NCBI GenBank assembly: GCA_004431415.1
Contig: QPMI01000005.1
Span: 124,001 to 188,000 of the forward strand
Origin: Cyanophora paradoxa CCMP329
Taxonomy: Eukaryota; Plantae; Glaucophyta
DNA length: 64,000 bases
Reading direction: 5' to 3'
This document shows, one piece after another, positions 22,647-45,488 of the stretch. The notes beneath the pieces are model-generated. The model ran no database searches. It was not told where the DNA came from and saw only the letters and a list, made by a program, of their open reading frames with translations. The translations under genes and the position numbers were made by a program. Each line of letters starts with the position of its first letter. Positions within the stretch are counted from its first letter, which is position 1.

Positions 22647-24039
22647 TCAGCGGCGGGCAGCCTCGTCGCAGGCCTCGAGCAGCATGTCGACGCTGACCCT
22701 GCGGAACCGCGCCTCGGCGTAGTACGGGATCGCCTTTACCGCGAAGACGTCACGCAGTTCATCCGGAATCTCCGCAGCTGGAGGGACGGTCAACTCATTC
22801 CGAAGTTCGGTTGGCAGGGCGGCCTGGGGCGGGGGCGCACGGGCGGGGAAGCGGCAGGACTTGTCGTCGTGGAGGAGGAGGATGTCCTTCCCCGCCCGCG
22901 CCGCGTGCCGCACCTCGCCCAGCACGTACTGCCTCGCCAGCACGTCTGCGCAGGGCCCCGGGAGATCAGACGCCACCAGGCACGAGAACAGCCGATCGGA
23001 CCCTGGGAGATGATGAGGACAACGATCGCGGAGGCGTCGATGATCTCCTTGATCCTGCGGGGCGGGGGGGGGGCGGCTCGGGCGAGGTGCGGTGAGTGCT
23101 CCAACTCGAGAGGGGCGCACTGGTGGAGCTCGAGGTGGGAGTCGTCGACGTCGAGGAAGACGCGGAGGCCGGGGCGGGCCTGCTCGAGCTGGAGCTTGAG
23201 GGCGAGGGCGAGGTGGCCGGCGGGGGCCTGCTAGTGCGAGAGGAAGACGTCGTACTGGGCCGCTGCGGTGGGGCGTGAGGGGAGGGCGGGACCGGCTGCT
23301 CCGGAGCGGTGCACGGACCGAGGGCCGGGGCGGCAGGGCGCGGGGCGGCGGGGGCGGGCTGCGGCGGGGGGTGAGGGGCGGGGCGCGCGGGCGAGGCGGC
23401 GGGGCGCACCGCGGCGGCGGGGGCGGGGAGGGAGCGGAGGTAGGGCACGACGGCGGCGCACTGGGCTTTCGCGGAAGCGATAGCGGCATCGTGTGAGCTG
23501 TACGGTCCTTTTTGGTCGTTGACGGCGCGGCGGACGGGCTCGGGCCACGAGTCCACGACGGGGTTGTTGTGCACATACAGCTTCTCCAGGGCGGCGAGGC
23601 GGCCGATCTCGGACGGCAGCGCCGTGAGCTGGTTGCCGCCCACATTCAGCCACTGCAGGGCGGCGAGGCGGCCGATCTCCGGCGGCAGCGCCGTCAGCTG
23701 GTTGTTCCACACGTACAGCTCCTCCAGGGCGGCGAGGCGGCCGATCTCCGGCGGCAGCGCCGCCAGCTGGTTGTTCCACACGTACAGCTCCTCCAGGGCG
23801 GCGAGGCGGCCGATCTCCGTCGGCAGCGCCGCCAGCTGGTTGCTGCTCACGTACAGCCTCTGCAGGTTCGTCAGCTTGGCAAGCTCGGCCCCCGGGATGC
23901 TTGTGAGCTTGTTCCCGTCGAGGTCGAGCACGCGGATGTTCGCCGGCCCCGCCGCCGCGATCTCCGCCGCCGGCCACTCCGTCCGCCCCTCCTTCTTCAG
24001 GTCCAGCTTCCCCTCCGCCGGTATCCACCCCCTGCCCAT
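22647..24039 (-). pseudogene. LRR-TIR copy 1 (6 LRR, TIR subtype A) with an in-frame TAG early in the TIR
   Basis: MGRGW..GKLDL cap, 23-aa LRRs, NPVVDSWPE..VPYLRSL cap, then YDVFLSH*QAPAGHLALALKLQLE..LRVFLDVDD..VLGEVRHA. The stop is at 23231-23233. Confidence 0.8.
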
Positions 24040-24464
24040 GCCTGCGGGGCGGTCAGCGGCAGAAGCGCGCCGAGGGGAGCGCGCCCCCGCCCCGCCCGGC
24101 GGGTCCCCAGCCATGCGCATGCCTGGAGGAGCGCACCGTCGAATGATCGCCTTGCCGCAGCAATGCCGATCGAGCTGCTGGCGGCTCGCCCGCTGCTCTG
24201 TGCAGGGAGCTGCGCGCCGGTACAAGCAAGCAGTACTAGTGAGCGAACGACAGGCGAGCGATGCCAGAAACACGTCGGCTTCGCACCTGCCGCGATGAAT
24301 TCGATTCACAGTAGCGACAGGGTATGGCCGCCGCCAGTCCCAGGTGGCCTTGTCGTCCTTCTTGGCAGGGTCGTGTGTCCTGTAGAAGTTATCGTGCTCT
24401 TCCGCCGTGAAGTCACGGAAGTCCGTCATTTCGCGCCGCGGGCGGCGCGGCGGCGGCGGCGGGG

Positions 24465-24595
24465 GGGGTTCTACCCTGCAGGGGTACCCAGGGTTGCCCG
24501 ACGACCCTGCCACCCTGCAGGGTTCCACCCTCAGGGTGCCAGGGTGCAGGGTAAAACGCGCAGGGGACAGGGTAAAGGGTGGAACACTATCCAGG
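24465..24595. repeat. Cluster of CAGGG/CCCTG direct and inverted repeats, possible transposon terminus
   Basis: accctgcaggg occurs twice plus several caggg units. The segment is absent from the homologous upstream region of copy 5. Confidence 0.35.
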
Positions 24596-25579
24596 CCGCG
24601 CCGCGCCGGGGTACAGTCGCGCCGTGGCCGCTGCTGCTTCCATGGCGCTGAGGGGCGGGCCTGTCAGCTGCATGTCCATTGCTGTACATATCCACTCCAA
24701 GCACTTCTCTCCTTCTGTACTCCGGCCAGAGCTGTCAAGCTGGCCGGATCGAAATCCAGCGTGCTAGCGCGCGATCGGGACACAATTGCAAGCGCGGCGC
24801 AGCCCGCAGCCGAGACAATGGCGAAGCATAGCGCCGGCCGCGCGCGGGTGGCGGGTCGATCCGCTCCTCCGCGAGCGCTCCGCGCACGGGCGCGCGCCTG
24901 CTCCGCCCCGCTGGCGGCCCCGCCCGGGGCTTGGCCATGGCTCGGGGGCCTTGCGCCGGCCGCGGCCCCACGCGCGCCGCGCTGCGCGTCCCGCCGCTGC
25001 AGCAGACCCGCAGCAGCAGCCGCCGCCGCCGACGCCCTCGGCGCCGCCACGCCCCCTCGGAAGCCTCGCCCCCGTGCACCCGCAGGCCCCGCGGGCCGGG
25101 CGCCGGCCCCCTTTCGAATTCGTGCGGGTCGGGCACCCTCGCGGCCGGCCCTTCGGACCCCCCGCCTTCCCCCCCGAGGCTCAAGGTAAGGCGGGCCGGC
25201 GCCCGCCCTCCGCTTCTTCTAGGAATCTGATCCCGGGTTCTTGGGCTTCTCCTCAGGTTTACTCGGATTGGGCCTGGTCCCGGGCCGCACCCTCGGGTCC
25301 AGCCGGCGCCCGACGCCGCAGCGCCCCCGGCACGCAGCCCGCCGCCTCCCCCTCCGGGCCCCGTGGAGAGAGGGCGCCCGCCCTGTGCCCCCCAGATCCC
25401 TCTCCTTCGCGGGCCCAGGGCCCGCCTAGCCCCCTTCCCCCGGACCTCGCGGTGGGCCCCCTCCCCCCGTACCCCTCCGTATCCAAACCCCGCTTACCCC
25501 CCCTGGCCTCGCCCCCGCGCCCAACGCCCCGCGGACCCTGAGCGTGCAGGTCGTGCGCTCCGCCTTCCGAAGTTCCCCG

Positions 25580-26240
25580 GCCCCGCCCCCGGCCCTGAGG
25601 CTCCTCCGGGGTGCGAGCGGCCTGCCGGCCCTCCCCGCGCCCCCCGCCCGACAGGACGCTCCCCCTCCCCGCCCTTTCAGTTCTGGTCCGGTACCCCCCG
25701 GGCCACCCGCCCCCCGCCCGCCCCTCCGCCGCCGCCGCCTGAGCCGCCTGGCCTCGAGCCCGCCGCCCAAGGCCGTCTGAGCCGTCTGAGCCCCGCCCCC
25801 GGCCCTGAGGCTCCTCCGGGGTGCGAGCGGCCTGCCTTCTTCCCCTCGGCGCCGGATCGCCGACAGCGCCTGCCCTCCTCTCCAGGTGCGCGCACTTGAG
25901 CGTAGGCGACAGAGCACGGGGGGGCGCCACGCCGCTGCTTCCTGGACGGGAGTCCCGCCCGGCGCCCCCGCCACACCGACCGCCGCGCCGCGGCGCCGGC
26001 GCTCCCCGGCCCAACCCGGCCGGCCGCCTCCCTCCCGGAGGGCCCCCCGCCCGCCCCTCCCCACGCCCTTCACCCTACAGGACGCTCTCCTTTCCCGCCC
26101 CTTCAGCTCTGGTCCGGTACCCGCGGGCCGCCCGCCCCCCGCCCGCCCCTCCGCCGCCGCCGCCGTCTGAGTAGCCCGGCCTCGAGACCGCCGATGAAGG
26201 CCGTCTGAGCCGTCCGAGCCGTACGCGTCTGAGCCCGCTC
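25580..26240. repeat. GC-rich local repeats
   Basis: ccccgcccccggccctgaggctcctccggggtgcgagcggcctgcc at 25581 and 25791. caggacgctc..ctggtccggtacc at ~25652 and ~26078. ccgtctgagccgtc at ~25773, ~26201 and ~38660. Confidence 0.75.
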
Positions 26241-26549
26241 CGCCCCGCGCCTCTGCCCTCCCACCCCAGCAGCAGGCAGCCGCCCGGCCCCGGCCCGCCC
26301 GGGCGCCCGCGGCCCCGCCCGCCCCTCCCGCGCCTCCCGCCCGGCCCTTCCTTCCCCTTCGAGTTTCCCCCCCCCCCCTCCCGTGTCCCCAGTCGCCCCC
26401 CCCCCCCCCCCCCCCCCCGTGGCCTCCGCCCGCCCGCCCTCCTCCAGGGCGCCGGGGCGCGCCGCGGTCGCCCCCTCCTGGAGCTCCGGGGCGCCGGGGC
26501 GCGTCGCCCGCCCTCTGCAGCTGCAGCTGCCTCTATGTTAGCTATAGCC

Positions 26550-27250
26550 TTATGTTAGCTATGTTGGCTCAGGTGTTCGCTTATGTTAGCTATAGGTGTA
26601 CCGCTCACAAGACAGACTTTCCGAGGCGGACTGAATTCGCGGAAGGCGGGGGGGGGGGGGGGGGGAAGATGGGGGAAGGGGGAGGGGAGGGGAGGCCTCC
26701 GTGCACGTGTACGAGCTGTGCATGGGCAAGCGAGGATGCGCCGGTCAGATGCTGGGCCGATGCTGCAGACGCGCATGCGCACCTTCAGCCGTTCGCTGCA
26801 CGTGCGGGGCCCTGCGCGGTCGGCGTGCGTGCGTAAGCGACTCGGCGAGCTGCGATCACGAGCGCCGCCCCGCGCGAGCTCGAACGAGTGCCGGGCCGGG
26901 CGCCTACCTCGACGATCCTTAGAAAGCCGGTCGCGTGATTCTAGGAGAGCGTAGTTCTAGAAAGCTTACGAAGCCGTCTCCAAGAAGCTAGGGGAGGCGC
27001 GGAGGGCCGGGGGCGCCAACCTCACTCGAAGACCCTCTTCCTCTGTGTGGGCCCCCCGGTCGCCCCGTCGGCCTCCTTCTCCTCCTCCTCCTTCTCCTGC
27101 GCTGCGTCAGCCCTCATTGCGGGCGCCGCGCCGCGGGCGGCGCCGGGCTGCCGCACCCGTTCCCGCTTCGAATTCGCTGAGCCGCCACCCGAGCTCGAGG
27201 CACCCTCGTCCTGCGGCCGGTTGAGAGGCGCGGCTGAGAGTCTGAGATTC
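26550..27250. repeat. Diverged segmental duplicate of ~39290-40020; its start also matches 22455-22500
   Basis: Shared gctcaggtgttcgcttatgttagct..gtaccgctcacaagacagactttccgaggcgg, gcatgggcaagcgaggatgcgccg and a (CCT)n tract. Confidence 0.8.
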
Positions 27251-27476
27251 ATGGCCCAGAAGAGCACAAGCATGATCTACAATTATAAAACGCTTCCGCG
27301 GGGCGAGGGGGGGGGGGGGAGGGGGGGGGGATTGCGAGGGCGCGAGCGGGGAGGCGCGGCTCACTGATCGCGAAGCGCCAGCGAGGCTGTGCTCGCGCAG
27401 CTGAGGAGGGGCGGCTCGGCTCAGATCTGAGCAGGGGGGAGGGGGGGGGGAGGTGGGAAGGGAGGAGGGGAGGAGG

Positions 27477-29587
27477 TCAGGCGTCGGCGCGAACCGCTGC
27501 GGCGCACTGCTCGAGCAGCGCTTCGATGCTGGCGGCCTTGCGCTTGTTCTGCAGGGGGTACAGGATGGCCGCGCGCGCGAGCGCCGGCCTCAGGTCCTCT
27601 GGTACCTCCCCCGCTGGAGGAACGGTCGTCTGCATGTCAGGGGGGTACAGGCAGGGGCCGTACCGGCGGGGAAGGGGCAGGAGGCCTCGTCGTGGAGGAG
27701 GACGATGTTCTTGCCCGCCCCAATCGCGTGCCGGACCTCGCTCAGCACGCTCGAGCTCTTCAGAACATCTGCGCGACGCAAGCGAGTCAGACATGGACAC
27801 GAGACCGCGCGTGCGAGACAGGGCAGCGAGGGGGCTGGCATGGGCGGCCGGACCCTTCGAGACGATGAGCACGACGCTCGCGGAGGCGTCGATGATCTCA
27901 TGGATCCTGCGGGACGGAGGACGAGACTTGGGGTCAGCGCGGATCGTTCCCGGAGCCTGGGCGGGGCCGGGGACCAGAGGGCGCACCGGTGCAGCTCGGG
28001 GCGGGGGCCGCCGGCATCGAGGAAGACGCGGAGGCCGGGGCGGGTCTGCTCCAGGTGCACCTTGAGGGCGCGGGCGAGCGGTCCCGCCGTGTCGCGCTCG
28101 TGCGAGAGGAACACGTCGTACTGGAACGACGCCGCCGGGAACACTGCGGCGCGGAGTGAGCGCTCGTGCGCGAGAAATGGAGCGAAGGCGGTGCACGGAC
28201 CGGAGGCAGGCACGGCGGGGCGCGGGGGGGCGGCATGGGGCGGCGGGGGCGACGGTTCGGGGGCGGCGGCAGCGGGCTGCGACGCGAAGCGGTGAGGGGC
28301 GGGGCGCGAAGCGGAGAGCTCCGCGGAGGGGCGCACCGCGGCGGAGGGGGCGGTGAGGGAGCGGAGGTAGGGCACGACGGCGGCGCACTGGGCTCCGCCA
28401 TCGTCACGGTTGGCGTTGACGGCGCGGCGGACGGACTTGGGCCACGAGTCCACGACGGGGTTGTGATCGACGTAAAGCGTTTGAAGGGCGGGGAGGCGGC
28501 CGACCTCCGGCGGCAGCGCCGTCAGCCGGTTGCTGTTCGCCCACAGCGTGTGCAGGGCCTCGAGGCATCCGATCTCGGGCGGCAGCGCCGTCAGCCGGTT
28601 GTAGCCCACGCCCAGCGCCTGCAGCGCGGCGAGGCAGCCGATCTCCGGAGGCAGCGCCGTCAGCCGGTTATTCGTCAACCCCAGCCCCGTCAGGTTCGTG
28701 AGCTTGGCGAGCTCAGCCCCCGGAATGCTCGTGAGCTCGTTGTTGCCGAGGTCGAGCACGCGGATGTTCTCGGGCCCCAGCCGCGCGATCTCCGCCGTCG
28801 GCCATTCCGTTCGCCCCTCCGCCCCCAGGTCAAGCCTCCCCTCCCACGGGAACCACCCGTCTATGTCTGCGGGGCGGTCAGCGTCACTGGGTCACTAGCG
28901 CCTGTTGCGTCGGGAGTCAGGAACGCAGGGGCGGGATGTGCACGGACCGAGGGTCGGCGCCGGCGGAGCTGATGGTGCGGCAGCGACGGGCTGCGGAGGG
29001 AGGTGAGGAGCGACCAAGCACCGACCAAGGGAAGGGGCGCGGGGGCGGCGCAGCGGGCGCACCGCGGCGGCGGGGGCGGTGAGGGAGCGAAGGTAGGGCA
29101 TGACGGCGGCGCACTGGGCCCCGCCATCGTCACGGTTGGCGTGGACTGCGAGGCGGACGGGCTCGGGCCACGAGTCCACGACTGGGTTGTTGTGCACGGA
29201 CAGCGTGACCAGGGCATCGAGGCGGCCGATCTCCAGCGGCAGCGCCGCCAGCCCGTTGTTGTCCACAAACAGCGTATGCAGGGCCTTGAGGCAGCCGATC
29301 TCGGGTGGAAGGGCCGTCAGCCGGTTGTGGCCCACGCCAAGCGCCTGCAGCGCGGTGAGGCGGCCGATCTCCGGCGGCAGCGTCGTCAGCCGAGTATACG
29401 TCAATCCCAGCGCCTCCAGTTTTGTCAGCTTGGCGAGCTCGGCGCCCGGGATGCTCCTCAGTTTGTTGTTGCCGAGGTCGAGCACGCGGATGTTCTCCGG
29501 CCCCACCCGCGCGATCGCCGCTGCCGGCCACTCCGTCCACCCCTCCGCCTCTAGGTCCAGCTTCCCTTGCTCCGGGTCCCACCTCAT
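27477..29587 (-). CDS. LRR-TIR copy 2: two LRR modules (5+5 repeats) plus TIR subtype B
   Basis: Module A 29587-28948, intron 28947-28867, module B 28866-28201. TIR exons start at 28143: YDVFLSHERDTAGPLARALKVHLE..VLSEVRHAIGAGKNIV..PEDL..ASIEALL. Junctions are in frame. Confidence 0.88.
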
Positions 29588-30879
29588 GGCCTGGGGGGAG
29601 CCGCAGGGCGTAGCGTGACGCAGGAAGCCGCTGAGCGCGCCCGCCGACAGCCGCCAGCGTCCGTCAGCTGCAACGGAGCCGGTCACGCGGTCTCCGCTGG
29701 CTGCTCGCGCTGTGCTGAACTGCAGCGAACTCGCTGCGAACGAAGCACTGGGGTACAGTCGCAGCGCCCGGCGCAGCGCCAGCAAGCCAGAGTTGAATAG
29801 CGTCCGGCAAGCACTCGGACCGTGTCGGACGATCATTTGGATCGCTACAGGGTGCGTGGTGCGGCTTGTCAAGTTGCTCTCCGTAGCCTCCATCTCTTGA
29901 CCGCGAGCCGCCGACCCGCCAGGCCGCAACCGATCGGCCCGCGCGGCGCGCATATTGCATGCCGCGGCAGGACGCCTTCTCCCATTGCGCCAGCCCGCTC
30001 GTAATTCCGATCCGCTCATTCAGATGCAACGCCAGCCGCCCAGCCGCTCATTCAATCCGATCTGATCTGTCCGAGCCGCCTGGCCCGAGCACCTCTCGGG
30101 CGGCCACGTCTCGTTGCGGCGCTGCCAAGTCTTCTCCGAGGCTCGCTCACGGCCGCGCCTCACGCGCCTCACGGCCGCCGCGGGGTGCGTTTGGAGCGCT
30201 TCTGATGCGGTTCGGTCGGCGGCAGGGCGTGCCCTTTGTCAGCCGGAGCGGACTCTTCCATTCTCTCGCCCTCGGGCGCGTTCGGTCCAGCGGAACGGGC
30301 TCCATGCGACCCCGCACGATCGGAGCGGACTCTCGATCTCATCTTTCCTGCATTAGGGTGCGCTTCGGGCCCGCGCCGCCCACCTTGGGCCGCCCCGCGT
30401 CCTTATCTCGCCCTCAGGCCTGGCCGAACAGTTTTTTCGCTGTACCCCTCCACCACGGCGGCGCCGAGCCCCGAAGGGCGCACCGATGGAATCTCCTTGT
30501 CATTCCCGATCGAACGGTGTGCGGCACGTCGTGGCGGTGCGTTCTAAGTACCTGTACCCCCATATCCCTCCGGACCCGACCTTCGCCCCAGGACCCCGTT
30601 GGACTTTTGTCCGCCCCTCTCGAGCACGGCGAATCGAATGGTGCGCACCACGCCGGCCGTATCCACATGCCCGAAGCGCTAGAGCCGCCCCGACCCCTTG
30701 ATCTTGCCAGTGATTGGGTACCCGGACGCTCGACCCCTTGATCAGGTACCCGGGCGCTTCTGGGGCCGATCCCGCGGGCAAAAGGCTGTTCTCACGCCTC
30801 GGGCGACCTCAGAGACCTTGTAGGACCGCAGAGGGGTCGGCGACGGTGCTGGCGGCCCTGCGCTCAGTCCAAGGTCGAG
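29285..30879. repeat. Near-identical direct segmental duplication, copy 1 (copy 2 at ~36975-38570)
   Basis: Sequence matches at an offset of 7690-7691 bp, and the ORF translations are identical in the track. Confidence 0.95.
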
Positions 30880-31004
30880 AGTACGCACGGTGCTGCGGGC
30901 CGCCGCCGGGCCGGGCGGGCGCCCCGATGCCAGCCGCCCCGCTTGCTCGCCCCCCCGCGGCCGATTGCTTGCTCGCTCCCCCTCGGCCCGGGCCGGGGGA
31001 GCGA

Positions 31005-31400
31005 GCAATCGATATCGGCACGGCGCAGGCGTGCGCAATTGATATATACATCGCTTGTAAGTATATCAATTTGTACGTATACGGCGGTGATCATGAGCTC
31101 GAGGGTGGCGATGTGCATACATATGGAAGGTCCTAGGTTTGGAGCAATCGATATCGATATCGATATCGATATCGCGATCGCGATCGATATCGGCTGCGCA
31201 TATCGGGCGCGCATGCGCATGCGGCCGCGGGCCGGCGCCGCCCGGCGCGCGGCCGCGCGCGCGCGGCCGGCGCTGCCGCGGGCTCCGGCGCCGGCCGCAG
31301 TGCATACGCACTGCAGCTGCCGAATTCGAATGCACGTACAGCTGCGCGTCTAAAGCTCTCCAGATCCTACTAGCTATAGGCAGCAAGATCTAGGTAGATC
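31005..31400. repeat. Palindrome-rich low-complexity tract including (ATCGAT)n
   Basis: atcgatatcgatatcgatatcgatatcgcgatcgcgatcgatatcg, gcgcatgcgcatgc, tctaggtagatctaga. Confidence 0.8.
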
Positions 31401-31866
31401 TAGACCGGTACCAGTCTGACCAAGTTTAGACCAACGAGCTGGGGGGTACCGTTGCAACCGGTGCCCATCGAAGTGCAGCTGCAGCTGACTCAGGCCGTTC
31501 ATCGAAGCTGCAACGCGTTCCGCAGCAGCGGATGCGAAGCCGCAACGCGTTCCGCAACAGCGTTTCCAAGCACCGGGCGAGCAGCCAGCGACACGTCCGA
31601 GCGGGCGGGGGCGAGCACGAGAACTTCTGACCAGTCGCTTCGAAAGTTTGTTTTGCTGCCGACCAATTGCAAGGGAATCCGTCGAAGGTGCGCGACTCGG
31701 GACGGCGCATAGCATACGAGGCTAGAAACTACGCTTCGCTTTCGGTCGGACGGTGTGCCGAGAAGCGTTAATTGCCGCTTCGAAATCCCACCAAGCCACG
31801 CGGTGGGCAGGCGGAGCGGGGGCGCGCTCCCCGCAGCGCGCCTCTGCCGCTGACCGCCCCGCAGGC

Positions 31867-34800
31867 ATGGGCTGTGGGTGGGAACCGAAGGAGGGGAAGC
31901 TGGACTTGAAGGGAGAGCTGCGAACGGAATGGCCGGCGGCGGAGATCGCGCGGGTTGGGCCTGAGAACATCTTTGTGCTCGACCTCAGCAAGAACAGGCT
32001 GACGGGCATCCCGGGCGCCGAGCTCGCCAAGCTGACAAACCTGGAGAGGCTGTTTTTGAGCGGTAATTTGCTGACGGCGCTGCCGTTGGAGATCGGCCGC
32101 CTCGCCGCCCTGTCGTGGCTGGACGTGAGCAACAACCAGCTGACGGCACTGCCTCCGGAGATCGGCTGCCTCGCCACCCTGCATCAGCTGGTAGCGAGCC
32201 GCAACCATCTGATGTCGCTGCCGTCGGAGACAGGCGCCCTCGCCGCCCTGGAGGTGCTGAACGTGAGCCACAACCGGCTGACGTCGCTGCCGCCGGAGAT
32301 CGGCCGCCTCGACGCCCTTCAGTCGCTGGGCGTGACCGACAACCAGCTTACGTCCCTGCCGCCGGAGATCGGCCGCCTCGCCGCCCTGCGGTTGCTATAC
32401 GCTCACGGCAACCCCGTCGTGGACTCCTGGCCCGAGCCCGTCCGCTGCGCCGTCAACGATAATTCCGACGTCAGCTGCCGCGATGCCTCTGCCGTTTCCG
32501 GGAAAGCCCAGCTCGCTGCCGTCGTGCCCTACCTCCGCTCCCTCCTCGCCCCCGAGGCCGCGGTGCGCCCCGCCGCGCCGCCCCCGTGCCCCACCTCTCA
32601 CCCGCCGTCGCAGCCGGCGACTGACGCCCCGCACGCCCCAAGCCCTCCCGCGCCGACCTCAGGTCCGTGCAACGCTGCCCGGGCCGCCCCAATCGGGACC
32701 TCACCCGTGCGCGACCGAATCGCGCAGGCGAGCCCTCGCGCGGGACGTGGAACCAGAGGAACGGGAAGTTGGACCTGCAGAAGACGGGGCAGACGAACTG
32801 GCCCTCGGGGAGAATCGCGCGGTTCGGCTCCAAGAACATACAGGAGCTCGACCTCGGAGGGAACAAGCTCGCGCGCATCCCGGGGGCGGAGCTCGCCAAG
32901 CTGACGAACCTGAAGAAGCTGTGGTTGAGCGGCAACCAGCTGACGTCGCTGCCGTCGGAGATCGGCGCCCTCGCCGCCCTGCAGGAGCTGCACGTGGAGG
33001 GCAATCAGCTCACGGCTCTGCCGCCGGAGATCGGCCTGCTTTGCCTGCAGAAACTGGATGCGAGCAACAACCAGCTGACGGCGCTGCCGCCGGATATCAA
33101 CCGCCTCTTCGCCCTGCAGCAGCTGAACGCAAGCAGGAACCAGTTAACGACGCTGCCTTCGGAGATCGGCCACCTCGCCGTCCTGCGGGGGCTGGACGTT
33201 AGCGGCAACCAGCTGACGGCGCTGCCATCGGAGATCGGCCGCCTCGATGCCCTGGTGACGCTGTCCGTGCACAACAACCCCGTTGTGGACTCGTGGCCCG
33301 AGCTCATCCGCCGCGCCGTCAACGACAATGAGGGTGACGGTCAAGCCCAGCTCGCCGCCGTCGTGCCCTACCTCCGCTCCCTCCCCGCCCCCACCGCCGC
33401 GGTGAGCCCCGCCGCGCCGTCCCTGCGCCCCACTCCTCACCCGCCGTTGCAGCCCGCCACCAACGCCCCGCACGCCCCAATCCCTCCCGCGCCGGCCTCC
33501 GGTCCGTGCACATCAAAACGACCCAGTTATAACCTCGCCTGAGCTTTACGCCGCCCTGCAGGCACGGACAGGAGGTGGAAAGCGGAGCAGGGGATACTTT
33601 ACCTGCGGAGAGAGGGGCGGACGGAGTGGCCGGCGGTGGAGATCGCGCGGGCGGGGCCCGAGAACATACGCGAGCTCGACCTCGGAGGAAACAAGCTCAC
33701 GCGCATCCCAGGGGCGGAGCTCGCAAAGCTCACGAACCTGGAGAAGCTGGAGTTAAGCGGCAACCAGCTGACATCGCTGCCGCCGGAGATCGGCCACCTT
33801 GCCGCCCTGAAGTTTCTGAACGTGACCAACAACCAGCTGGCGGCGCTGCCGCCGGAGATCGCCCGCCTCGCCACCCTACAGACGCTGAACTTGAGTTGGA
33901 ACAAGTTGACGGCGTTGCCGCCGGAGATCGGCCACCTCGCCGCCTTGCGGAAGCTGGATTCCACGTTCAACCAGCTGACAACGCTGCCGCCGGAGATCGG
34001 TCTCCTCGCCGCCCTGGAGGAGCTGCAGTTGCGGTGCAATAAGCTGACGTCGCTGCCGCCGGAGATCGGCCGCCTTGCCGCCCTGAAGTCTCTGTACGTG
34101 GATGGCAACCAGCTGGCGGTGGTGCCGCCGGAGATTGGCCGCCTTCCCGCCCTGCAGTGCCTGTTAGTGCACAGCAACCCCGTCGTGGACTTGAGCACGA
34201 GCTCGTGGCCGGACTCTATCCGTAACTTCGTCAGCTTAGATTGTAACAGCAATTCCTACGATGACCAGACCGCCTACGATTCCGGGAAAGTCCAATGCGC
34301 CGCTGTCGTGCCCTACCTCCGCTCCCTCCTCGCCCCTGAGGCCGCGGTGAGCCCCCCCCCCCACCCCCCCACCCTCCCCCCCCGAGCCCCCCCCCCCCCC
34401 CCCCCCCCGAGCCCCCGCCCCGCGCCCCCCCCCCCCCCCCACCCCCTGACCCGCTGCCGCAGCCCGCCGCCCGCGCCGCCGAACCTCCTCCGCCCCTGCC
34501 GCCCCATGCCGCCCTGCGCCCTGCCGCGCCTGCCTCTGGTCCGTGCACTGCTTCCGGTCCGTGCACTGCTTCAGCTCCAGCCTCCGCACGCGAGCTCTAA
34601 CGCCGCGCCGCAGTGTTCCCGGCGGCCTCGGCGCCGGCCAAGTTCGACGTGTTCCTCTCCCACGAGCGCGACACGGCGGGCCCCCTCGCCCGCGCCCTCA
34701 CGGTGCACCTGGAACAGGCCCGCCCCGGCCTCCGCGTCTTCCTCGATGCCGGCGAGCCCCGCCCCGAGCTGCACCGGTGCGCCCTCTGGTCCCCGGCCCC

Positions 34801-35324
34801 GCCCAGGCTCCGGGAAGGATCCGCGCTGACCCCAAGTCTCGTCCTCCGTCCCGCAGGATCCATGAGATCATCGACGCCTCCGCGAGCGTCGTGCTCATCA
34901 TCTCGAAGGGTCCGGCCGCCCAGCTCCCCTCGCTGCCCTGTCTCGCACGCGCGGTCTCGTGCCCATGTCTGACCCGCCTGCGTCGCGCAGATGTTCTGAA
35001 GAGCTCGAGCGTGCTGGGCGAGGTTCGGCACGCAATTGGGGCGGGCAAGAACATCGTCCTCCTCCACGACGAGGCCTCCTGCCCCTTCCCCGCCGGTACG
35101 GCCCCTGCCTGTACCCCCCTGACATGCAGCCGACCGTTCCTCCAGCGGCGGAGATCCCGGAGGACCTGAAGCCGGCGCTCTCTCGCGCGGCTATCCCGTA
35201 CCCCCTGCAGAACAAGCGCAAGGCGGCCAGCATCGAAGCGCTGCTCGAGCAGTGCGCCGCAGCGGTTCGCGCCGACGCCGTACCCCCTTTCATCCCCCCT
35301 CCCCCCCGAGAGGCTCAGATCTGA
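31867..35324 (+). CDS. LRR-TIR copy 3: three LRR modules (7+7+8 repeats) plus TIR subtype B
   Basis: Modules 31867-32662, 32728-33501 and 33562-34538, each with an internal linker intron (e.g. 34347-34462). TIR starts at 34614: FDVFLSH..VLGEVRHA. All junctions are in frame. Confidence 0.88.
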
Positions 35325-36500
35325 GCCGCCGCCTCTCCGGCGCCTCGCGACCGGTCAGCTGCGCCTCTTCGCCCGCGTCCTCTCGTCCCACCCATTCATA
35401 TTCATCATGCGGTGGGTGCGCAGGGCCAGCTGCCGGCCGGCCGGCCGGGGCAGGAGGAGGGCGCCTCGTGATCGGGCGGCGGGGCGGAGCTCTGGGAAGG
35501 AAAAGGCCCAGACAAGGACCGTCGAGGTGGGCCCTCGCGATCGAGCTCGTGCCGGGCGGCGCGATCCCCCTCAGGCCTGAGCGGGGCGGGCGCCGCAGGG
35601 CTTCGCCCAGGACGGGGTCCGGATGCTCTAGAAGAAGGTGTGCGCGCGCCTGTACCCCCGTCTCAACTCCAGCTCGCATGAACGCCCTCCGGATCCTCAG
35701 GTCATCGTCGATTCGGAGAGGTCCTGCACGATCGCTGTACCCCAGGGGCGGCCTTCGAAACGCCGTACCCCGCGGGCAGCTGCCGGTGGCGGGGGGCATG
35801 GGGGACTACCGCTGGCTCCGGGGCGAGATCGAGCAGGCCGTGGGGCGAGGCAGGGCGGCCCTGGGCGGCTTCAGCATGGAGGGTGCCCGGCTCCGGACTC
35901 CCGTGCCCCTCGCCCCCGCCCGCGCCTGACACGGCGCCTCAGCTGCAGGCAAGAGCTTCGGCGAGACGAGGAGGGCCGCGAGGGCGCCCCCGGCGACGGC
36001 GACCCCGATCATTGTTAGCACTATAGCTATAGCTAGCCGCGTCTGCATCGCTCCTGTCCCAGCGGGCGTGGGTCCCCTCGTCGCAGACCTCGAGCAGCAG
36101 CCAGGAAAAACAAACTTTGTGGAAACAAGTACCAACTCGAGTCAACAAGTGAACATTCTGATGCTAGCTATAGTAGCGGCCAGGGCAGGACTGGGAGCCC
36201 GGGGGGCCGGGCCGGGCCGGGGGAGAGGGAGGGGGGAAGGCGCCCGAGGCCTCCTCGAGGACAAAGAGAGGGGGGCGAGAGGGGCGGGGGAGGGGAGAGG
36301 GGAGGAAGGGCCCCTCCAGGGCCAGGGGAGGCGGGGGCGCTGACGGCAGGCGAGAGGAAGCGAGCGACCGCCTCGGACGACGGGGGCGAGGCGGGAGGCC
36401 GAGCGGAGGCGGGCGGAGGCGGGGCGGAGGCGCGGGACGGCCCGGGGCCGACGGGGACGAGGCGAGAGGCGGGCGGGGCCCTCAGCGGCGGGCGGGGCCC

Positions 36501-37277
36501 TCAGCGGCGGGCGCCCTCGTCGCAGGCCTCGAGCAGCATCTCGACGCTGACCTTGCGGAACCGCGCCTCGGCGTAGTACGGGATCGCCTTGCGCGCGAAC
36601 ACGAGCCGCAGGTCCTCCGGGATCTCCGCAGCTGTGGGGCGATCAAATTCCGAAGTTCGGTTGGCTGGTGGTTCTGGGGCGGGGGCGCACGGGCGGGGAA
36701 GCGGCAGGACTTCTCGTCGTGGAGGAGAACGACGTTCTTCCCCGCCCGCGCCGCGTGCCGCACCTCGCCCAGCACGTACTGGCTCGCCACGACGTCGACG
36801 TCCCCCTCGAGGGGCGGGCCGGGTCGTGTACATGTGTGTTTATCAGATATCACAATAGCGCTCGGCTAGCTTACAATAGCGTTGTGCACGGACAGCGTCA
36901 CCAGGGCATCGAGGCGGCCGTCTCCGACGGCAGCGCCGTCAGCTGGTTGTTGCCCACCCACAGCTCCTGCAGGGCCTTGAGGCAGCCGATCTCGGGTGGA
37001 AGCGCCGTCAGGCGGTTGTGGCCAACGCCCAGCGCCTGCAGCGCGGTGAGGCGGCCGATCTCCGGCGGCAGCGTCGTCATCGAGTAAACGTCAATCCCAG
37101 CGCCTCCAGTTTTGTCAGCTTGGCGAGCTCGGCGCCCGGGATGCTCCTCAGTTTGTTGTTGCCGAGGTCGAGCACGCGGATGTTCTCCGGCCCCACCCGC
37201 GCGATCGCCGCTGCCGGCCACTCCGTCCACCCCTCCGCCTCTAGGTCCAGCTTCCCTTGCTCCGGGTCCCACCTCAT
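36501..37277 (-). pseudogene. LRR-TIR copy 4: chimeric, deleted and frameshifted
   Basis: The 5' part duplicates module A of copy 2 with 1-bp deletions (~37080, ~36920). It is joined through AT-rich filler (36830-36880) to the C-terminal half of a subtype A TIR (QYVLGEVRHAARAGK..IPYYAEARFR). Confidence 0.85.
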
Positions 37278-38570
37278 GGCCTGGGGGGAGCCGCAGGGCG
37301 TAGCGTGACGCAGGAAGCCGCTGAGCGCGCCCGCCGACAGCCGCCAGCGTCCGTCAGCTGCAACGGAGCCGGTCACGCGGTCTCCGCTGGCTGCTCGCGC
37401 TGTGCTGAACTGCAGCGAACTCGCTGCGAACGAAGCACTGGGGTACAGTCGCAGCGCCCGGCGCAGCGCCAGCAAGCCAGAGTTGAATAGCGTCCGGCAA
37501 GCACTCGGACCGTGTCGGACGATCATTTGGATCGCTACAGGGTGCGTGGTGCGGCTTGTCAAGTTGCTCTCCGTAGCCTCCATCTCTTGACCGCGAGCCG
37601 CCGACCCGCCAGGCCGCAACCGATCGGCCCGCGCGGCGCGCATATTGCATGCCGCGGCAGGACGCCTTCTCCCATTGCGCCAGCCCGCTCGTAATTCCGA
37701 TCCGCTCATTCAGATGCAACGCCAGCCGCCCAGCCGCTCATTCAATCCGATCTGATCTGTCCGAGCCGCCTGGCCCCGAGCACCTCTCGGGCGGCCACGT
37801 CTCGTTGCGGCGCTGCCAAGTCTTCTCCGAGGCTCGCTCACGGCCGCGCCTCACGCGCCTCACGGCCGCCGCGGGGTGCGTTTGGAGCGCTTCTGATGCG
37901 GTTCGGTCGGCGGCAGGGCGTGCCCTTTGTCAGCCGGAGCGGACTCTTCCATTCTCTCGCCCTCGGGCGCGTTCGGTCCAGCGGAACGGGCTCCATGCGA
38001 CCCCGCACGATCGGAGCGGACTCTCGATCTCATCTTTCCTGCATTAGGGTGCGCTTCGGGCCCGCGCCGCCCACCTTGGGCCGCCCCGCGTCCTTATCTC
38101 GCCCTCAGGCCTGGCCGAACAGTTTTTTCGCTGTACCCCTCCACCACGGCGGCGCCGAGCCCCGAAGGGCGCACCGATGGAATCTCCTTGTCATTCCCGA
38201 TCGAACGGTGTGCGGCACGTCGTGGCGGTGCGTTCTAAGTACCTGTACCCCCATATCCCTCCGGACCCGACCTTCGCCCCAGGACCCCGTTGGACTTTTG
38301 TCCGCCCCTCTCGAGCACGGCGAATCGAATGGTGCGCACCACGCCGGCCGTATCCACATGCCCGAAGCGCTAGAGCCGCCCCGACCCCTTGATCTTGCCA
38401 GTGATTGGGTACCCGGACGCTCGACCCCTTGATCAGGTACCCGGGCGCTTCTGGGGCCGATCCCGCGGGCAAAAGGCTGTTCTCACGCCTCGGGCGACCT
38501 CAGAGACCTTGTAGGACCGCAGAGGGGTCGGCGACGGTGCTGGCGGCCCTGCGCTCAGTCCAAGGTCGAG
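36975..38570. repeat. Segmental duplication, copy 2 of 29285-30879
   Basis: Direct sequence match. Confidence 0.95.
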
Positions 38571-39157
38571 TCCAAGCGAAGTCCAAGCCTGGCAGGGTTC
38601 CGCCCTCGAGTACCCCTCTCGGGCCGGCCGCCCCTCTGCCTCCGCCGGGTCGCCTGAGTCCGTCTGAGCCGTCCGAGCCGTCTGAGGCCGCCCCGCCCCG
38701 GGCCTCTGCCCTCCCCGTGCTATCCCTGCACCCCGCCATCCCATTCCCGCCCTTCGTTCGGCCGCTCACCGTAGTACCCATCTCTCCCCTCTCTGCCCCT
38801 TGTCTTCTACTCCACCCCCCCACCCCCCCCCCCCCCCCCCCCCCCCAGAGCCGTCCTCTGGAGCCGCCGGCCCCACGCTCTAGCTCCCCGGCGCGGCCTC
38901 CCGGCCTCCGAGCCTCGGCGATCAATCTTCGCGGCTCCTTCAATCGTCCGCGGCGCGGGGCCCGCTCGGGCTCGGGCCCCCGCCCGCCGGCGCTCCCCTC
39001 CCTCCCCCCCGCCCTCCGCCGGTCGCGAGGCGCGCCGCGGGTTGCAGCGGCGCTGCGAGGACCCGAGGACTCGGAGCCGAGCGGCTGAGCAGGGGGCCGC
39101 CTTCCTCCCCCCAGCTCCCAGCCTGCCGGCCGTCCTGACCATCGTCGCGGACGCACA

Positions 39158-39236
39158 CTGGACGCCGCGGGACGACTACCTCATCTCCGTCGGCGGCGCC
39201 GACCTCTGCGTCATGCAGTGGCGCCGCGAGAAGTAG
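39158..39236 (+). pseudogene. Orphan duplicate of the terminal exon end of the calpain-EML gene
   Basis: WTPRDDYLISVGGADLCVMQWRREK* is identical to 22327-22405 and is followed by similar 3' flank. Confidence 0.92.
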
Positions 39237-39916
39237 CTATAGGCGGCCGCTATGTTTGTTCGGAGCTCGTATCTCTTATCTAGAAGGTTCATGTTAGCTC
39301 AGGTGTTCGCTTATGTTAGCTCTAGGTGTACCGCTCACAAGACAGACTTTCCGAGGCGGACTGCATTTGCAAAGGCGGGGGGGAGGGGGGGCGCAGGAGG
39401 AAGAAGGTGGGGGGGGGGGGGGGGGGGGGCTGCGTTCGCGAGGGCGGGCGCCCGGGCTGCAGATGTGGGGAAAGGGAGGGGAAGGGGAAGGGGGGAAGGG
39501 GTGGAGTGGGGGCGGGCGGGGGGGGCCGCGGGCGGGAAATCGCGGCTCGCGCCGGGGCCCTCCGTGAACGAGCTGCGCATGGGCAAGCGAGGATGCGCCG
39601 ATCAGTGAACGAGGCTCGGCCGAGGCTGCAGCCGCGCATGCGCACCGTGGCATCTTCAGCCGGTCGCAGCTGTGCGATCCGCTCCCCGACTCGCTCCGAG
39701 GCTCAGCTCTTCGGTTAGTCCTCTAGCCCTTTGCGTGCGGGGCCCTGCGCGGCCGGTGTGCGTGCGTGAGCGACTCGGCGGGCTGCGATCGCGAGCGTCG
39801 CCCCGCGCGGGCTCGACCGAGTGCCCACCTCGACGACCCTCTTCTTTTGTGTGGGCCCCTCCTTCGCGCCGTCGGCCTCCTTTTCCTCCTCCTCCTCCTC
39901 CTCCTCCTGCGCTGCG

Positions 39917-41718
39917 TCAGCACTTTTTAGGAGCGCCGCGCGGCGTGGTGCGGCGCCAGGCGGCCGCACCCGTTCCCGCTTGGCTGCGCCGCCCGAGTTC
40001 GAGGCGCCCTCGTCCTGTGCCGGGCGCCCCTCCTCGCGGAGCTGAGGGGCGGCTTGGCTCTGAGCTTCTCGGGGGGAAGGGGGGTACGGCGTCGGTGCGA
40101 ACCGCTGCGGCGCACTCCTCCAGCAGCGCTTCGATGCTGGCCGCCTTGCGCTTGTTCGCCACGGGGTACAAGATAACCCTGCGCGCGAGCGCCGGCCTCA
40201 TGTCCTCGGGTACCTCATCCGCTGGAGTGGAGGAACGGTCAGCTGCATGTCGAGGGGTACAGGGACGTGCACGTACCGGCGGGGAAGGGGCAGGAGACCT
40301 CGTCGTGGAGGAGCACGACGCTCTTGCCCGCCCCGATCGCGTGCCGGACCTCGCCCAGCACGCTCGAGCTCTTCAGGACGTCTGCGCGACGCAAACAAGC
40401 AAGTCAGACCGAAGCATTATACAGGGCAGCGAGGGGGCTGGCATGGGCGGCCGGACCCTTCGAGATGATGAGCACGACGCTCGCGGAGGCGTCGATCATC
40501 TCCTTGATCCTGCGGGGCGGGAGACGAGACTTGGGGTCAGCGCGGATCCTTCCCGGAGCCTGGGCGGGGGACCAGAGGGCGCACCGGTGCAGCTCGGGGC
40601 GGGGCTCGTCGGCCTCGAGGAAGACGCGGAGGCCGGGGCGGGCCTGTTCCAGGTGCACCTTGAGGGCGCGGGCGAGGGGGCCCGCCGTGTCGCGCTCGTG
40701 CGAGAGGAATACATCGTACTGGGACGACGCCGCCGGGATCGCTGCGGAGGGGCGTGAGCGCTCGCGTGCGGAGGCTGGAGCGGAGGCGGTGCAAGGACCA
40801 GAGGCAGGCGCGGCAGGGCTTGCAGCGGGCGGTGAGGCGGGGCCGGGCTGCGGTAGCGGCGAGTGAGGGGCGCGATGCAGCGCGGCGTGGCGGTGTGGCG
40901 GGGCGTACCTCGGCAGCGGCGTTGGGGAGGGAGCGGAGGTAGGGCACGATGGCGGCGCACTGGGCTTGACCGCCAAACATGCTGGTGTTGTTGTTGACGG
41001 CGCGGCGGACGGGCTCGGGCCACGAGTCCACGACGGGGTTGTTGTGCACGGACAGCGTCGCCAGGGCATCGAGGTGGCCGATCTCCGGCGGCAGCGCCGT
41101 CAGCTTGTTGCCGCTCACGTCCAACCACTGCAGGGCGGCGAGGCGGCCGATCTCCGGCGGCAGCGCCGTCAGCTGGTTGTTGCTGACGTCCAGCGTCTGC
41201 AGGTTGGCGAGGCGGCCGATCTCCGGCGGCAGCGACTTCAGCTGGTTGCTGTTCACGTCCAGCCACTGCAGTGCGCCGAGACGACCGATCTCCGGCGGCA
41301 GCGCCGTCAGCCGGTTGTTTTTTGCGTTCAGCCAAAGCAGGGCTGCAAGGCGGCCGATCTCCGGGGGCAGCGCCGTCAGCTGATTGTTGCTCACGTACAG
41401 CCCCTGCAGGGCAGCGAGGCGGCCGATCTCCGGCGGCAGCGCCGTCAGCTTGTTATTGCTCAAGTCAAGCGACTGCAAAGCGGCGAGGCCGAAGAGCTCC
41501 GGTGGAAGCGCCGTCAGCTGGTTGCCATCCAAAAACAGCACCTCCAGGTTCGTCAGCTTGGCGAGCTCGGTCCCCGGGATGCTCGTGAGATCGTTTTGCC
41601 GGAGCTCGAGCCAGCGGATGTTCTCGGGCCCCGCCGCCGCGATCTCCGCCGCCGGCCACTCCGTCCGCCCCTCCCCCCCCAGCTCCAGCACACCCCTCTC
41701 TATCCACCCCCTGCCCAT
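39917..41718 (-). CDS. LRR-TIR copy 5: one LRR module (9 repeats) plus TIR subtype B
   Basis: Exon 41718-40909 (810 nt), linker exon 40847-40799, then YDVFLSH..LKVHLE..VLGEVRHA..VPEDMRPAL..ASIEALL. C-terminal end uncertain. Confidence 0.87.
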
Positions 41719-42354
41719 GCCTGCGGGGCAGTCAGCGGCAGAAGCGCGCCGCGGCGGCGGGGAGCGCGCCCCCGCCCCGCCCGGCGGGTCCCCAGCAAGC
41801 GACGCCAGAGCGTGGGCCATGGGGGCCCGGCCGGCGCCCCGTCAACTCGTCTCGCATCTTCCAGGCTATCCAGGCTATGCACCCGCCCGGAGGAGCGCAC
41901 CTTCAACGGATCGCCTTGACGCAGCAGAGCCGAGCTTTCGGAAGCGACGGAGCTCGCCCGCTCAGAGATTCCTCTCCGGTCACGCGCTGCCTGCTGGCCG
42001 CTCTGCGCTCGCGCCGGTACAAGCAAGCAGCCTGGCAGTGAGCGAGCGACATGCGAGCGATGCCAGAAACCCGTCGGCTTCGCACCTCCCGCCAGCGCCC
42101 GCCAGCGCACTGTAACGGAGCTGGTCGCACGCTCTCCGCTGGCCGCTCGCGCGCAGAGCTGACCGAGCACACCTTAACCACCTGACGCGGCCGTGATCCT
42201 GCTGGACCATTGCTGCGAACGAAGCTCTCCGGGGTACGGTCGCACCGCCGCGGCTCGCCCACAGGCCGCGCCCAGCAGCGCTTAACCTAGCACCAGCGCT
42301 TAACAAAAGAGCCCGGCGATTTCAGCCAGGAGACGAACAGGGCGAGCGCTGCCG

Positions 42355-43900: not shown

Positions 43901-44759
43901 GTCCGGTCTGCTGCGCCGGCCCCGCCCCATCGGCTTCCGAGCCCGGCCCTGCGCGCCGCTCCGCTTCCCGCGTATCCCCAGCCCTCACCGCCGCCGCCGC
44001 CCTCCCCTTGGCCCCGCGGGCCCTGGGGCCATATGCATCGCCGCGTCGTACCCGACCCCCCTCCCCCCCCCCCCCCCTCCCATCTCCCTCCGGCAGGGCG
44101 AGGCGGCCCCCGGCGGGCCGCAGCTGGTGCGCAGCCGCGCCTGCGCTGCGCGCCGCGCGCGTCTAAATCTCGCCCCGGCGGCCCCGGGCCCGAACCGCCC
44201 CGGCCGCCGGGCCGGGCCTACGACCGGCGCCGTCGCACTAGTACTAAATTTACGCCATGAATTTAAGTTAGATTCTATAAACGTTAACGATTTATCGTCT
44301 CTTCTCGCTATCGATCTGTCTCGAGCTCTGTGTCTTTCCTTTTTTATTGTCGATTTTGGCTCTTTGTCTTATCTTTCTTCGTGCTCTTGTCTTAGTTGTT
44401 TTGCTTTTTTGTCTTTATGCCCCCTGGGCAGCCCCCGCAGTGCTGGTGTCTAGAGACTGTGGCCGGTAATTCACCAAAAACAAATAACGTTATCTATAAT
44501 TCCGAGCCACCGATCGCGACGGACCGGTGACGATCGCGATTCAATGATTACGATTCGGTGACTGGTTTATGCACAAGTTCGCCGGTTGCCTCCTAGCTGG
44601 CCGCGGCCCCAGCTGCAGGGGAAACTTGAAAGAGCCCAACTTGGCAAGTTCCCGCCTAATTATACTACGGGGTCCGGACTCGGGACCGTCCGGGCCCCGG
44701 GCCCCGGCGGGAGGACTCCCGGAGTCCGGGATCCGCCGGCCGGCGCGCGTCACTCCGCG

Positions 44760-45042
44760 GATCCGCAAAGATCTAGATCTAATTATAAGAAGATCTAGCC
44801 GCTGAGCGCTGAACCGACATTAATCGCGATCGCCACCTCATGATCAGATCATGATGAAATCTCATTTTCAGGATTCACTCGGATCCGATCCGATGATCGA
44901 TACCTAGATCTATAGCTATAAGCTAGCTATATAGATTCGATGATCTAGATCCGCAGAGATCTAGAGCTGAACCGACATCAATTGCCGCCTCAGATCATGA
45001 TGAAGTCTCATTTTCGAATTCCGGATCCGGATTCACTCGGAG
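44760..45042. repeat. Diverged tandem duplication in a palindrome-rich intergenic region
   Basis: ctgaaccgacat..cagatcatgatgaa.tctcattttc..ggattcactcgga at ~44809-44883 and ~44967-45041. Confidence 0.75.
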
Positions 45043-45488
45043 CTCGCCGAGTCGCAAGCTGCGCATGCGCAGTGCGCACTGCGCGTGCGCAGGCTGCGCA
45101 GCCTTTTCAAAGTTTCGCCCGGCGCGACGTTTCGGTTCAGAGATAACGTACCCCCCGCGGCCTCCAGCTTGCTATGGCGCAAGTGCAGCTGCAGCGCGAC
45201 GGTACAGTTTTCCGGTATGCTGCGGTACCTGCCTCAGAGTCGAAGCACCGCCGGCTGCAGCGCGAGCTGGTACATGCGCTCTTAGCTGGGCCGGCGCCGC
45301 GAACTCGCGCCCAACGAGCTAGCTGCAGCGGAAGCCGCACACGCGCACGTGCTTGGTCTGTGCCTTCGATCGCCCATCCCGTCGAGCCTGCAGCAACGCA
45401 GCGCAGTGCACGTGCTTGCGTTCCAAGCAGCCGCATCGCTGGAGCGCGAGCGCAGCCCCGCCACCGAGTGAAAGCCCGACCTTGAGCG

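Follow-up and report, generated by a model that had tools for sequence, protein, structure and literature searches.

Organization of the LRR-TIR locus

The stretch analysed here, 64,000 nucleotides of contig QPMI01000005.1 from the glaucophyte Cyanophora paradoxa CCMP329 (positions 124,001 to 188,000; hereafter the window), contains a 19-kb cluster of four germline genes, A to D, and one remnant, M7, whose products are predicted to be soluble leucine-rich repeat (LRR) proteins with SARM1-type TIR tails. The initial annotation had likened this locus to the variable lymphocyte receptors (VLRs) of lampreys and hagfish, with hypervariable residues on the concave face of an invariant scaffold and diversifying selection for recognition. 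We find that variation is indeed concentrated on the predicted concave face; the pattern is however generic to the repeat type, lies in the germline and is not VLR-like, and the claim is thus weaker than first proposed.

A six-frame motif scan combined with stop-to-stop reading of the window recovered eight LRR modules on both strands between 22969 and 41841, and no orphan LRR units outside them. The arrays span 23572-41619 (repeat units proper, 23590-41619), and Tandem Repeats Finder detected 69-bp arrays at every module, with scores up to 590. Pfam LRR_8 and LRR_4 exceeded threshold in the modules, LRR_8 with 49.6-158.7 bits against a cut-off of 27. A module opens with a family-specific N-cap (G-K-L-D-L ... 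T-E-W-P ... G-P-E-N-I-R) that closes in a 24-residue first repeat, continues with three to seven canonical 23-residue repeats and ends in a C-cap repeat with helices (N-P-V-V-D-S-W-P ... Y-L-R-S-L), followed by a proline-rich linker. Each LRR module corresponds to one exon of about 525-912 nt, downstream of which stands a proline-rich mini-exon of 42-93 nt (14-31 residues), and one to three modules are spliced ahead of a C-terminal TIR; in gene B, a mini-exon follows each of the two LRR-module exons. TIR starts (Y/F-D-V-F-L-S-H) were found at four places, after M1, M2, M6 and M8. Protein searches mapped the existing gene models g15426, g15427, g15428 and g15431 (EukProt EP00741 Cyanophora paradoxa, contig tig00000042, a naming scheme for contigs also employed in a Cyanophora paper) onto the window (Table 1), which has a G+C content of about 70% and the fragmented open reading frame pattern typical of an intron-bearing eukaryote. 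A Pfam search of ten intergenic open reading frames of the window returned no match.

Two further features of the genes deserve mention. A Met-Gly start (M-G-R/K/C-G-W) is kept at the front of first modules (24039, 31864 and paralogs), where the annotation of several paralogs begins, and the in-frame sequence upstream of it (…R-S-P-R-R-A-S-A-A-D-R-P-A-G) is also conserved among paralogs; the start of paralog P0079, M-G-G-G-S-S, fits an N-myristoylation-like pattern. Moreover, poly-C tracts occupy cluster introns or linkers at 26369-26447, 34352-34446 (about 95 nt, in gene C, separating the M6 exon from the mini-exon that follows) and 38815-38846.

Table 1. Genes, LRR modules and repeat tracts of the cluster, in window coordinates.
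Feature	Position	Strand	Details	Basis
Gene A (tig00000042_g15426, P0019)	22650-24429	-	LRR module M1 and A-type TIR	Exon mapping, Pfam LRR_8/LRR_4
M1 repeats	23590-23937	-	First unit 23869-23937; four canonical 69-bp units 23590-23865	
Gene B (g15427, P0004)	27025-29587	-	M3 exon 29063-29587; M2 exon 28337-28867; TIR exons 27495-28144	Exon mapping
M2 repeats	28487-28765	-	First unit and three canonical units	
M3 repeats	29213-29491	-	First unit and three canonical units	
Gene C (g15428, P0124, 1115 residues)	30486-36149	+	M4 31864-32562; M5 32730-33401; M6 33564-34346; TIR exons 34613-35264	
M4, M5 and M6 repeats	31969-34151	+	16 canonical units and three first units; one M5 unit has 22 residues	
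M7 gene remnant	36650-37709	-	Ends in an A-type TIR exon	
Gene D (g15431, P0001)	39718-41820	-	M8 exon 40909-41820 with seven canonical units; TIR exons 40103-40742	
M8 repeats	41065-41619	-	First unit 41551-41619; seven canonical units 41065-41547	

Predicted structure of the LRR and TIR parts

An AlphaFold2 model of the gene D protein, computed from a 40-sequence alignment, reached a mean predicted local distance difference test score (pLDDT) of 81, and 95-99 in the LRR part. In the model a three-residue strand recurs with a 23-residue period and occupies unit positions 3-5, while positions 16-20 form a short helix. This output comprises secondary structure only, the concave-face exposure of positions 2, 3, 5, 7 and 8 resting on established LRR geometry; together they support an assignment of the variable positions to the solvent-exposed x positions of LxxLxLxxN. 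The location on a beta-sheet face put forward in the initial annotation hence agrees with the modelled strands at 3-5, whereas binding of a ligand by that face is something we infer. A Foldseek search identified the Leptospira LRR proteins (top, 49% identity), SHOC2, RSU1 and LRRC8 as the nearest solved folds, with E-values of 1e-14 to 1e-17 and 33-49% identity over 207-245 columns for the Leptospira proteins (including LIC11098), SHOC2 and RSU1. The sequence matches the periodicity LxxLxLxxNxLxxLPxxIGxLxx, and periodicity, Pfam scores and predicted solenoid all fit the ordinary 23-residue 'typical' (SHOC2-like) LRR class, to which the repeat belongs.

The gene D tail scores 34.7 bits with Pfam TIR_2 (PF13676; cut-off 28) and is modelled by AlphaFold2 as a beta-alpha-beta fold. 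Among solved structures the SARM1 TIR is closest to it in sequence (E = 2.6e-5), and a glutamate of the tail aligns with the catalytic glutamate of SARM1. By these criteria the tail classifies as a SARM1-type TIR with the catalytic glutamate retained, and cleavage of NAD+ is a putative activity. The Pfam lists of the family hold LRR, TIR and SAM families only, with no NB-ARC or NACHT. A hydropathy scan detected neither a membrane segment nor a signal-like N-terminus (the maximum Kyte-Doolittle value, KD(19), being 1.75, in the TIR or C-terminal region), and no cysteine clusters occur in the caps, at most one cysteine being present within the first 60 residues; the proteins are thus predicted to be soluble.

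Variation is concentrated on five positions of the repeat

To locate the variation we used the 35 canonical 23-residue (69-bp) units of the eight modules. Amino-acid entropy at unit positions 2, 3, 5, 7 and 8 amounts to 2.29, 3.34, 2.95, 2.54 and 2.70 bits, respectively, against 1.5-2.0 bits at positions 6, 10, 20 and 22 and at most 1.3 bits elsewhere, with four columns, L1, L4, L11 and P15, being invariant. An equal number of units (35) from seven paralogs on other contigs displays the same profile. Thus, the variation is not spread evenly over the repeat: the exposed positions hold 2.3-3.3 bits, most scaffold positions 1.3 or less. All ten heptads quoted in the initial annotation were recovered, QRLYVSS, EELYVWN and QWLNVGG in M1, HTLWANS in M2, QALGVGH in M3, SWLDVSN and HQLVASR in M4, RKLDSTF and EELQLRC in M6, and LWLNAKN in M8. 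The repeat numbers of 6, 5, 5, 7, 7, 8 and 9 per module, with the 24-residue first unit and the C-cap unit included, likewise agree with the range of 5 to 9 given there. Sequence variation among the modules extends to the C-caps (23440-41040), where the loop between the two helices differs from module to module in the alignment, both in sequence and in length (5-19 residues).

The notion of a nearly constant scaffold around a variable segment, in turn, holds for the units of the window and needs qualification beyond it. In the wider family, sampled with 157 unique units of 30 proteins, entropy climbs to 2.65-3.63 bits at the exposed positions and to as much as 1.8-2.7 bits at scaffold x positions; a near-invariant scaffold characterises this young subfamily and gives way to a looser one across the family. 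Moreover, the scaffold string NQLTxLPPEIGxL is the consensus of the whole hit set, unrelated LRR proteins included, and so reflects the general LRR class. Among 94 LRR proteins with at least seven units, retrieved by similarity to a consensus-like query, many unrelated ones, mostly metagenomic or bacterial, show the same contrast of high exposed and low scaffold variation, and P0001 and P0002 are not extreme in this set.

The residues found at the exposed positions are nevertheless not those expected from base composition. At positions 3 and 5, aromatic residues or histidine account for 26% (background 5%), and alanine, glycine, proline and arginine for 20% (background 38%). In a gene of 70% G+C these positions are therefore not merely drifting with a mutation bias toward GC-rich codons, an independent hint of function.

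Selection at the exposed codons

Counting by the Nei-Gojobori method yielded pN = 0.52 and dN = 0.90 for the five exposed codons. The corresponding dS values are 0.27 at the scaffold codons, 0.56 at the silent sites of the exposed codons themselves and 0.33-0.37 at cap codons, giving ratios of 3.2 relative to the scaffold and 1.6 relative to the exposed codons' own dS; positionally matched repeats of different modules returned the same values. In simulations with the same tree and codon frequencies, dN(exposed)/dS(scaffold) averaged 2.24 (5-95% range 1.65-3.08) at a true omega of 1, and 3.20 at an omega of 2. The observed ratio accordingly lies just above the 95th percentile of the neutral simulations, and we discarded it as proof of positive selection since, under this codon bias, it averages 2.2 already at omega = 1. 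Contrasts along a minimum spanning tree (binomial p 1e-27) were likewise rejected, because neighbours chosen by scaffold distance bias dS downward. Among alternative synonymous baselines the TIR part was dismissed as a calibrator: with its introns 93-95% identical among genes B, C and D, its history is more recent than that of the LRR part, for which it is therefore no yardstick.

The silent sites of the scaffold are unsaturated, with a codon heterozygosity of 0.1-0.38 compared with the 0.55-0.66 predicted from codon usage in the caps. Codon choice in the scaffold is set by position, with CTC for Leu21 in 29 of 34 units, CTG for Leu1, 4, 11 and 14, and GGC for Gly19 even though GGG dominates the caps. 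Silent divergence of the scaffold is 0.229 within and 0.220 between modules. This equality and the near-equidistance of the units fit ongoing homogenisation and make the scaffold dS a doubtful clock. In a column-shuffle test the units came out as nearly star-like (scaffold, P = 0.09; exposed sites, P = 0.06), and trees at the unit level hence carry little signal.

We then fitted our own class-wise fixed-effects codon model, in Goldman-Yang (GY) and Muse-Gaut (MG) form with F3x4 frequencies, on IQ-TREE trees. With a shared synonymous rate, omega of the exposed class is 1.25-1.27 (likelihood-ratio test 1.8, not significant), compared with 0.5-0.7 at positions 6, 10, 20 and 22, 0.25-0.39 at scaffold x positions and 0.05-0.07 in the core. 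At the module level (157 codons of seven modules, from caps and matched repeats) the exposed omega is 1.07-1.42 against 0.17-0.30 elsewhere, with p = 0.044, 0.105, 0.146 and 0.58. By position, 5 and 8 reach 1.64 with nominal significance under GY and a non-significant 1.36 under MG, while position 2 gives 0.74-1.26. When the exposed class receives its own synonymous rate, beta/alpha is 0.43. IQ-TREE runs on the exposed partition alone returned an omega of 0.52-0.89 under models accounting for codon bias and 2.35 under F1X4; five codons being too few and saturated, this estimate was set aside.

Taken together, the exposed codons change their amino acid 5-25 times faster than the scaffold, in line with the initial proposal, whereas the diversifying selection invoked there is significant in only one of six maximum-likelihood tests (p < 0.05). 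Their dN/dS is neither clearly at or below 1 nor clearly above it, depending on whether maximum likelihood (1.07-1.42), the exposed codons alone (0.52-2.35) or counting (3.2) is consulted. Omega at these positions is therefore about 1, plausibly between 1 and 2, which means either a lack of constraint or mild positive selection; the data fall short of establishing the latter.

Such values raise the alternative of neutral surface drift, in which exposed side chains are unconstrained (omega about 1) and the scaffold is kept uniform by purifying selection together with homology-dependent gene conversion that halts at the diverged 21-nt x-block, with no need for selection of new specificities. The mostly non-significant module-level estimates, the neutral expectation of the counting ratio, the position-fixed scaffold codons, the equal silent divergence within and between modules (as expected at a homogenisation plateau) and the recurrence of the pattern in unrelated LRR proteins all agree with it. 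The enrichment of aromatic, histidine and charged residues and the depletion of A/G/P/R despite about 70% G+C point the other way, as do the point estimates of 1.36-1.64 at positions 5 and 8 and a counting ratio at or just above the neutral 95th percentile. We regard drift as a serious contender that falls somewhat short of being probable.

Probable birth and death in the germline

The cluster contains a direct duplication of 1.69 kb, 98.8% identical, between 29189-30879 (5' part of gene B) and 36881-38570 (M7 copy). Nearly all of its 18 mismatches fall in the last ~200 bp, in LRR units 2-3, and the ~1.5 kb of N-cap and upstream DNA are almost identical. M7 has lost single nucleotides at two points, corresponding to gene B positions 29389 and 29229, and breaks off inside the C-cap unit to run on into an A-type TIR exon. 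The arrangement suggests a chimeric remnant born of unequal recombination between paralogs; a donor of its divergent third unit was not found in the window. Gene A carries an in-frame TAG at 23231-23233 on the minus strand, right after the beta-A motif YDVFLSH of its TIR, which the published model g15426 splices around at the expense of that strand (beta-A). Gene A is thus probably a pseudogene or has a crippled TIR.

Genes B, C and D share 93-95% identity in their TIR exons and introns, against a dS of about 0.3 between their LRR modules. Compared as tracts, 27452-28134, 34629-35307 (inverted) and 40228-40819 are 85-95% identical. This likeness points to a recent conversion or exchange of the effector half. 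Aggregated, the tandem paralogs on both strands, the variable repeat and module numbers, the chimeric M7, the stop in gene A and the near-identical TIR parts of B, C and D point towards germline birth and death, as in plant R-gene clusters.

These data also bear on the comparison with VLRs, whose incomplete germline gene is filled in by somatic assembly of cassettes and which are secreted or glycosylphosphatidylinositol (GPI)-anchored and possess Cys-rich LRRNT and LRRCT caps and 24-residue LRRV units. The Cyanophora genes share with them a uniform LRR scaffold, diversity on the concave beta-sheet and a variable repeat number; an incomplete gene with loose cassettes, a signal for secretion or GPI anchoring, Cys-rich caps and LRRV units are absent. 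Accordingly, the label 'VLR-like' did not survive the analysis: the germline holds complete genes, each of the seven intact modules is a full exon from N-cap to C-cap, there are no loose cassettes, signal peptides or membrane segments, the units have 23 and not 24 residues, and the C-terminus is a TIR. Somatic diversification, in which units or modules would serve as donor cassettes copied into an expressed gene in single cells, could draw on the numerous similar 69-bp units spread over 19 kb in both orientations, on the truncated copy M7 and on the two- and three-module genes. Every intact module belongs, however, to a complete gene model ending in a TIR, the sequence between the genes holds neither orphan units nor Pfam-matching reading frames, the caps and the missing stalk do not fit, and the frameshifted M7 has the appearance of decay. 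We consider this scenario extremely improbable.

Distribution and relatives of the family

A hidden Markov model of the N-cap, searched against 1.84 billion representative proteins, matched about 29 clusters (50% identity) over the whole profile, and all 25 of the named ones are from C. paradoxa. Five partial matches, starting at profile positions 5-6, are metagenomic LRR proteins, and a search confined to the C-cap and TIR region retrieved C. paradoxa models exclusively. Judged by these searches, the LRR-TIR family seems confined to this glaucophyte. The tails differ among paralogs, comprising two TIR types and SAM-TIR. Full-text literature searches found no paper on this LRR-TIR family, and a 2019 survey of the origins of the domains of nucleotide-binding LRR receptors (NLRs), which included one glaucophyte, reported nothing of this kind.

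With clusters of plant NLRs and receptor-like proteins, as represented by Cf-4/9 and TIR-type NLRs (TNLs), for which the following traits are well established, the locus has in common a germline tandem multigene organization, variation at the exposed x of LxxLxLxx, variable repeat number, pseudogenes, unequal recombination and the combination of LRR with TIR. Yet the Cyanophora genes lack NB-ARC, their TIR is C-terminal and SARM1-like where that of plant TNLs is N-terminal and of plant type, their units are of the 23-residue SHOC2 type and not the plant-specific 24-residue type, and a single gene may carry one to three whole LRR modules. SARM1, an NADase with ARM-SAM-SAM-TIR architecture, resembles them in TIR sequence and in the aligned catalytic glutamate, and two paralogs, P0023 and P0079, are LRR-SAM-TIR proteins. 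The genes of the window, in contrast, have neither SAM nor ARM, an LRR sensor stands in place of the SARM1 ARM, and their own NADase activity is putative. Toll-like receptors likewise join an LRR recognition domain to a TIR output domain, but the Cyanophora proteins have no signal peptide or transmembrane helix, and their linker is a proline-rich mini-exon.

SHOC2, RSU1 and the Leptospira LRR proteins share the 23-residue repeat type and lack the Cyanophora N-cap, C-cap and TIR tail. The family might accordingly consist of non-immune adaptors, with the LRR as a SHOC2/RSU1-like scaffold for cellular partners and a TIR that serves signalling or NAD metabolism and not defence. SHOC2 and RSU1 rank high in the structural search, though behind the Leptospira proteins that lead it, and the predicted solubility suits such a role. 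On the other hand, the family has expanded in this one lineage to about 30 clusters or more, with pseudogenes and changes in copy number, and its members differ in repeat number and carry exchanged TIR or SAM-TIR tails. Such traits typify defence-type families and not conserved adaptors, and we judge this explanation unlikely.

Proposed function and evolutionary meaning

In our assessment the locus is fairly probably a germline tandem cluster of a C. paradoxa-specific family of soluble LRR-TIR proteins that evolves by birth and death, each module exposing a different concave surface. The leucines, Asn9, Pro15 and the helix side are held by strong purifying selection, whereas positions 2, 3, 5, 7 and 8 experience little or no constraint on residue choice and evolve at roughly the silent rate or slightly above it. 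Being rich in aromatic and charged residues, these positions would give every module its own concave surface, which may bind a ligand, possibly a pathogen-derived one. By analogy to other immune proteins that unite LRR and TIR, binding could then switch on the TIR, through NAD+ cleavage or signalling.

Several observations weigh against this view. The contrast of variable face and constant scaffold is common in unrelated LRR proteins and is by itself no mark of immunity; five of the six maximum-likelihood tests of positive selection are not significant; the exposed codons alone give an omega below 1 in IQ-TREE under codon-bias models, F1X4 excepted; the units are nearly equidistant within and between modules, so that trees of 69-bp units are weak; and gene A and M7 are probably dead.

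LRR variation at the binding face is a classic signature of immune-type receptors. True diversifying selection at the exposed positions, with homology-guided conversion keeping the scaffold uniform, would turn the roughly 30 or more LRR-TIR and LRR-SAM-TIR genes into a germline recognition repertoire; we see this stronger version as possible yet doubtful. It would represent an immune-receptor system without a nucleotide-binding domain, in a deep-branching archaeplastid, with the LRR sensor coupled directly to a SARM1-type TIR. Were the surface variation adaptive, a very simple sensor-plus-NADase immune design would exist close to the base of the plant kingdom, which bears on the question of how LRR sensors first came together with TIR immunity. 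For the germline birth-and-death family that we favour, the variable predicted binding face is an expected property of an interesting and apparently undescribed lineage-specific group of LRR-TIR proteins.

Elsewhere in the window, G+C content is lower at 6-8 kb, 10-12 kb and 60-64 kb, and the region 44000-60000 displays a strong and sustained negative GC skew (-0.13 to -0.27).

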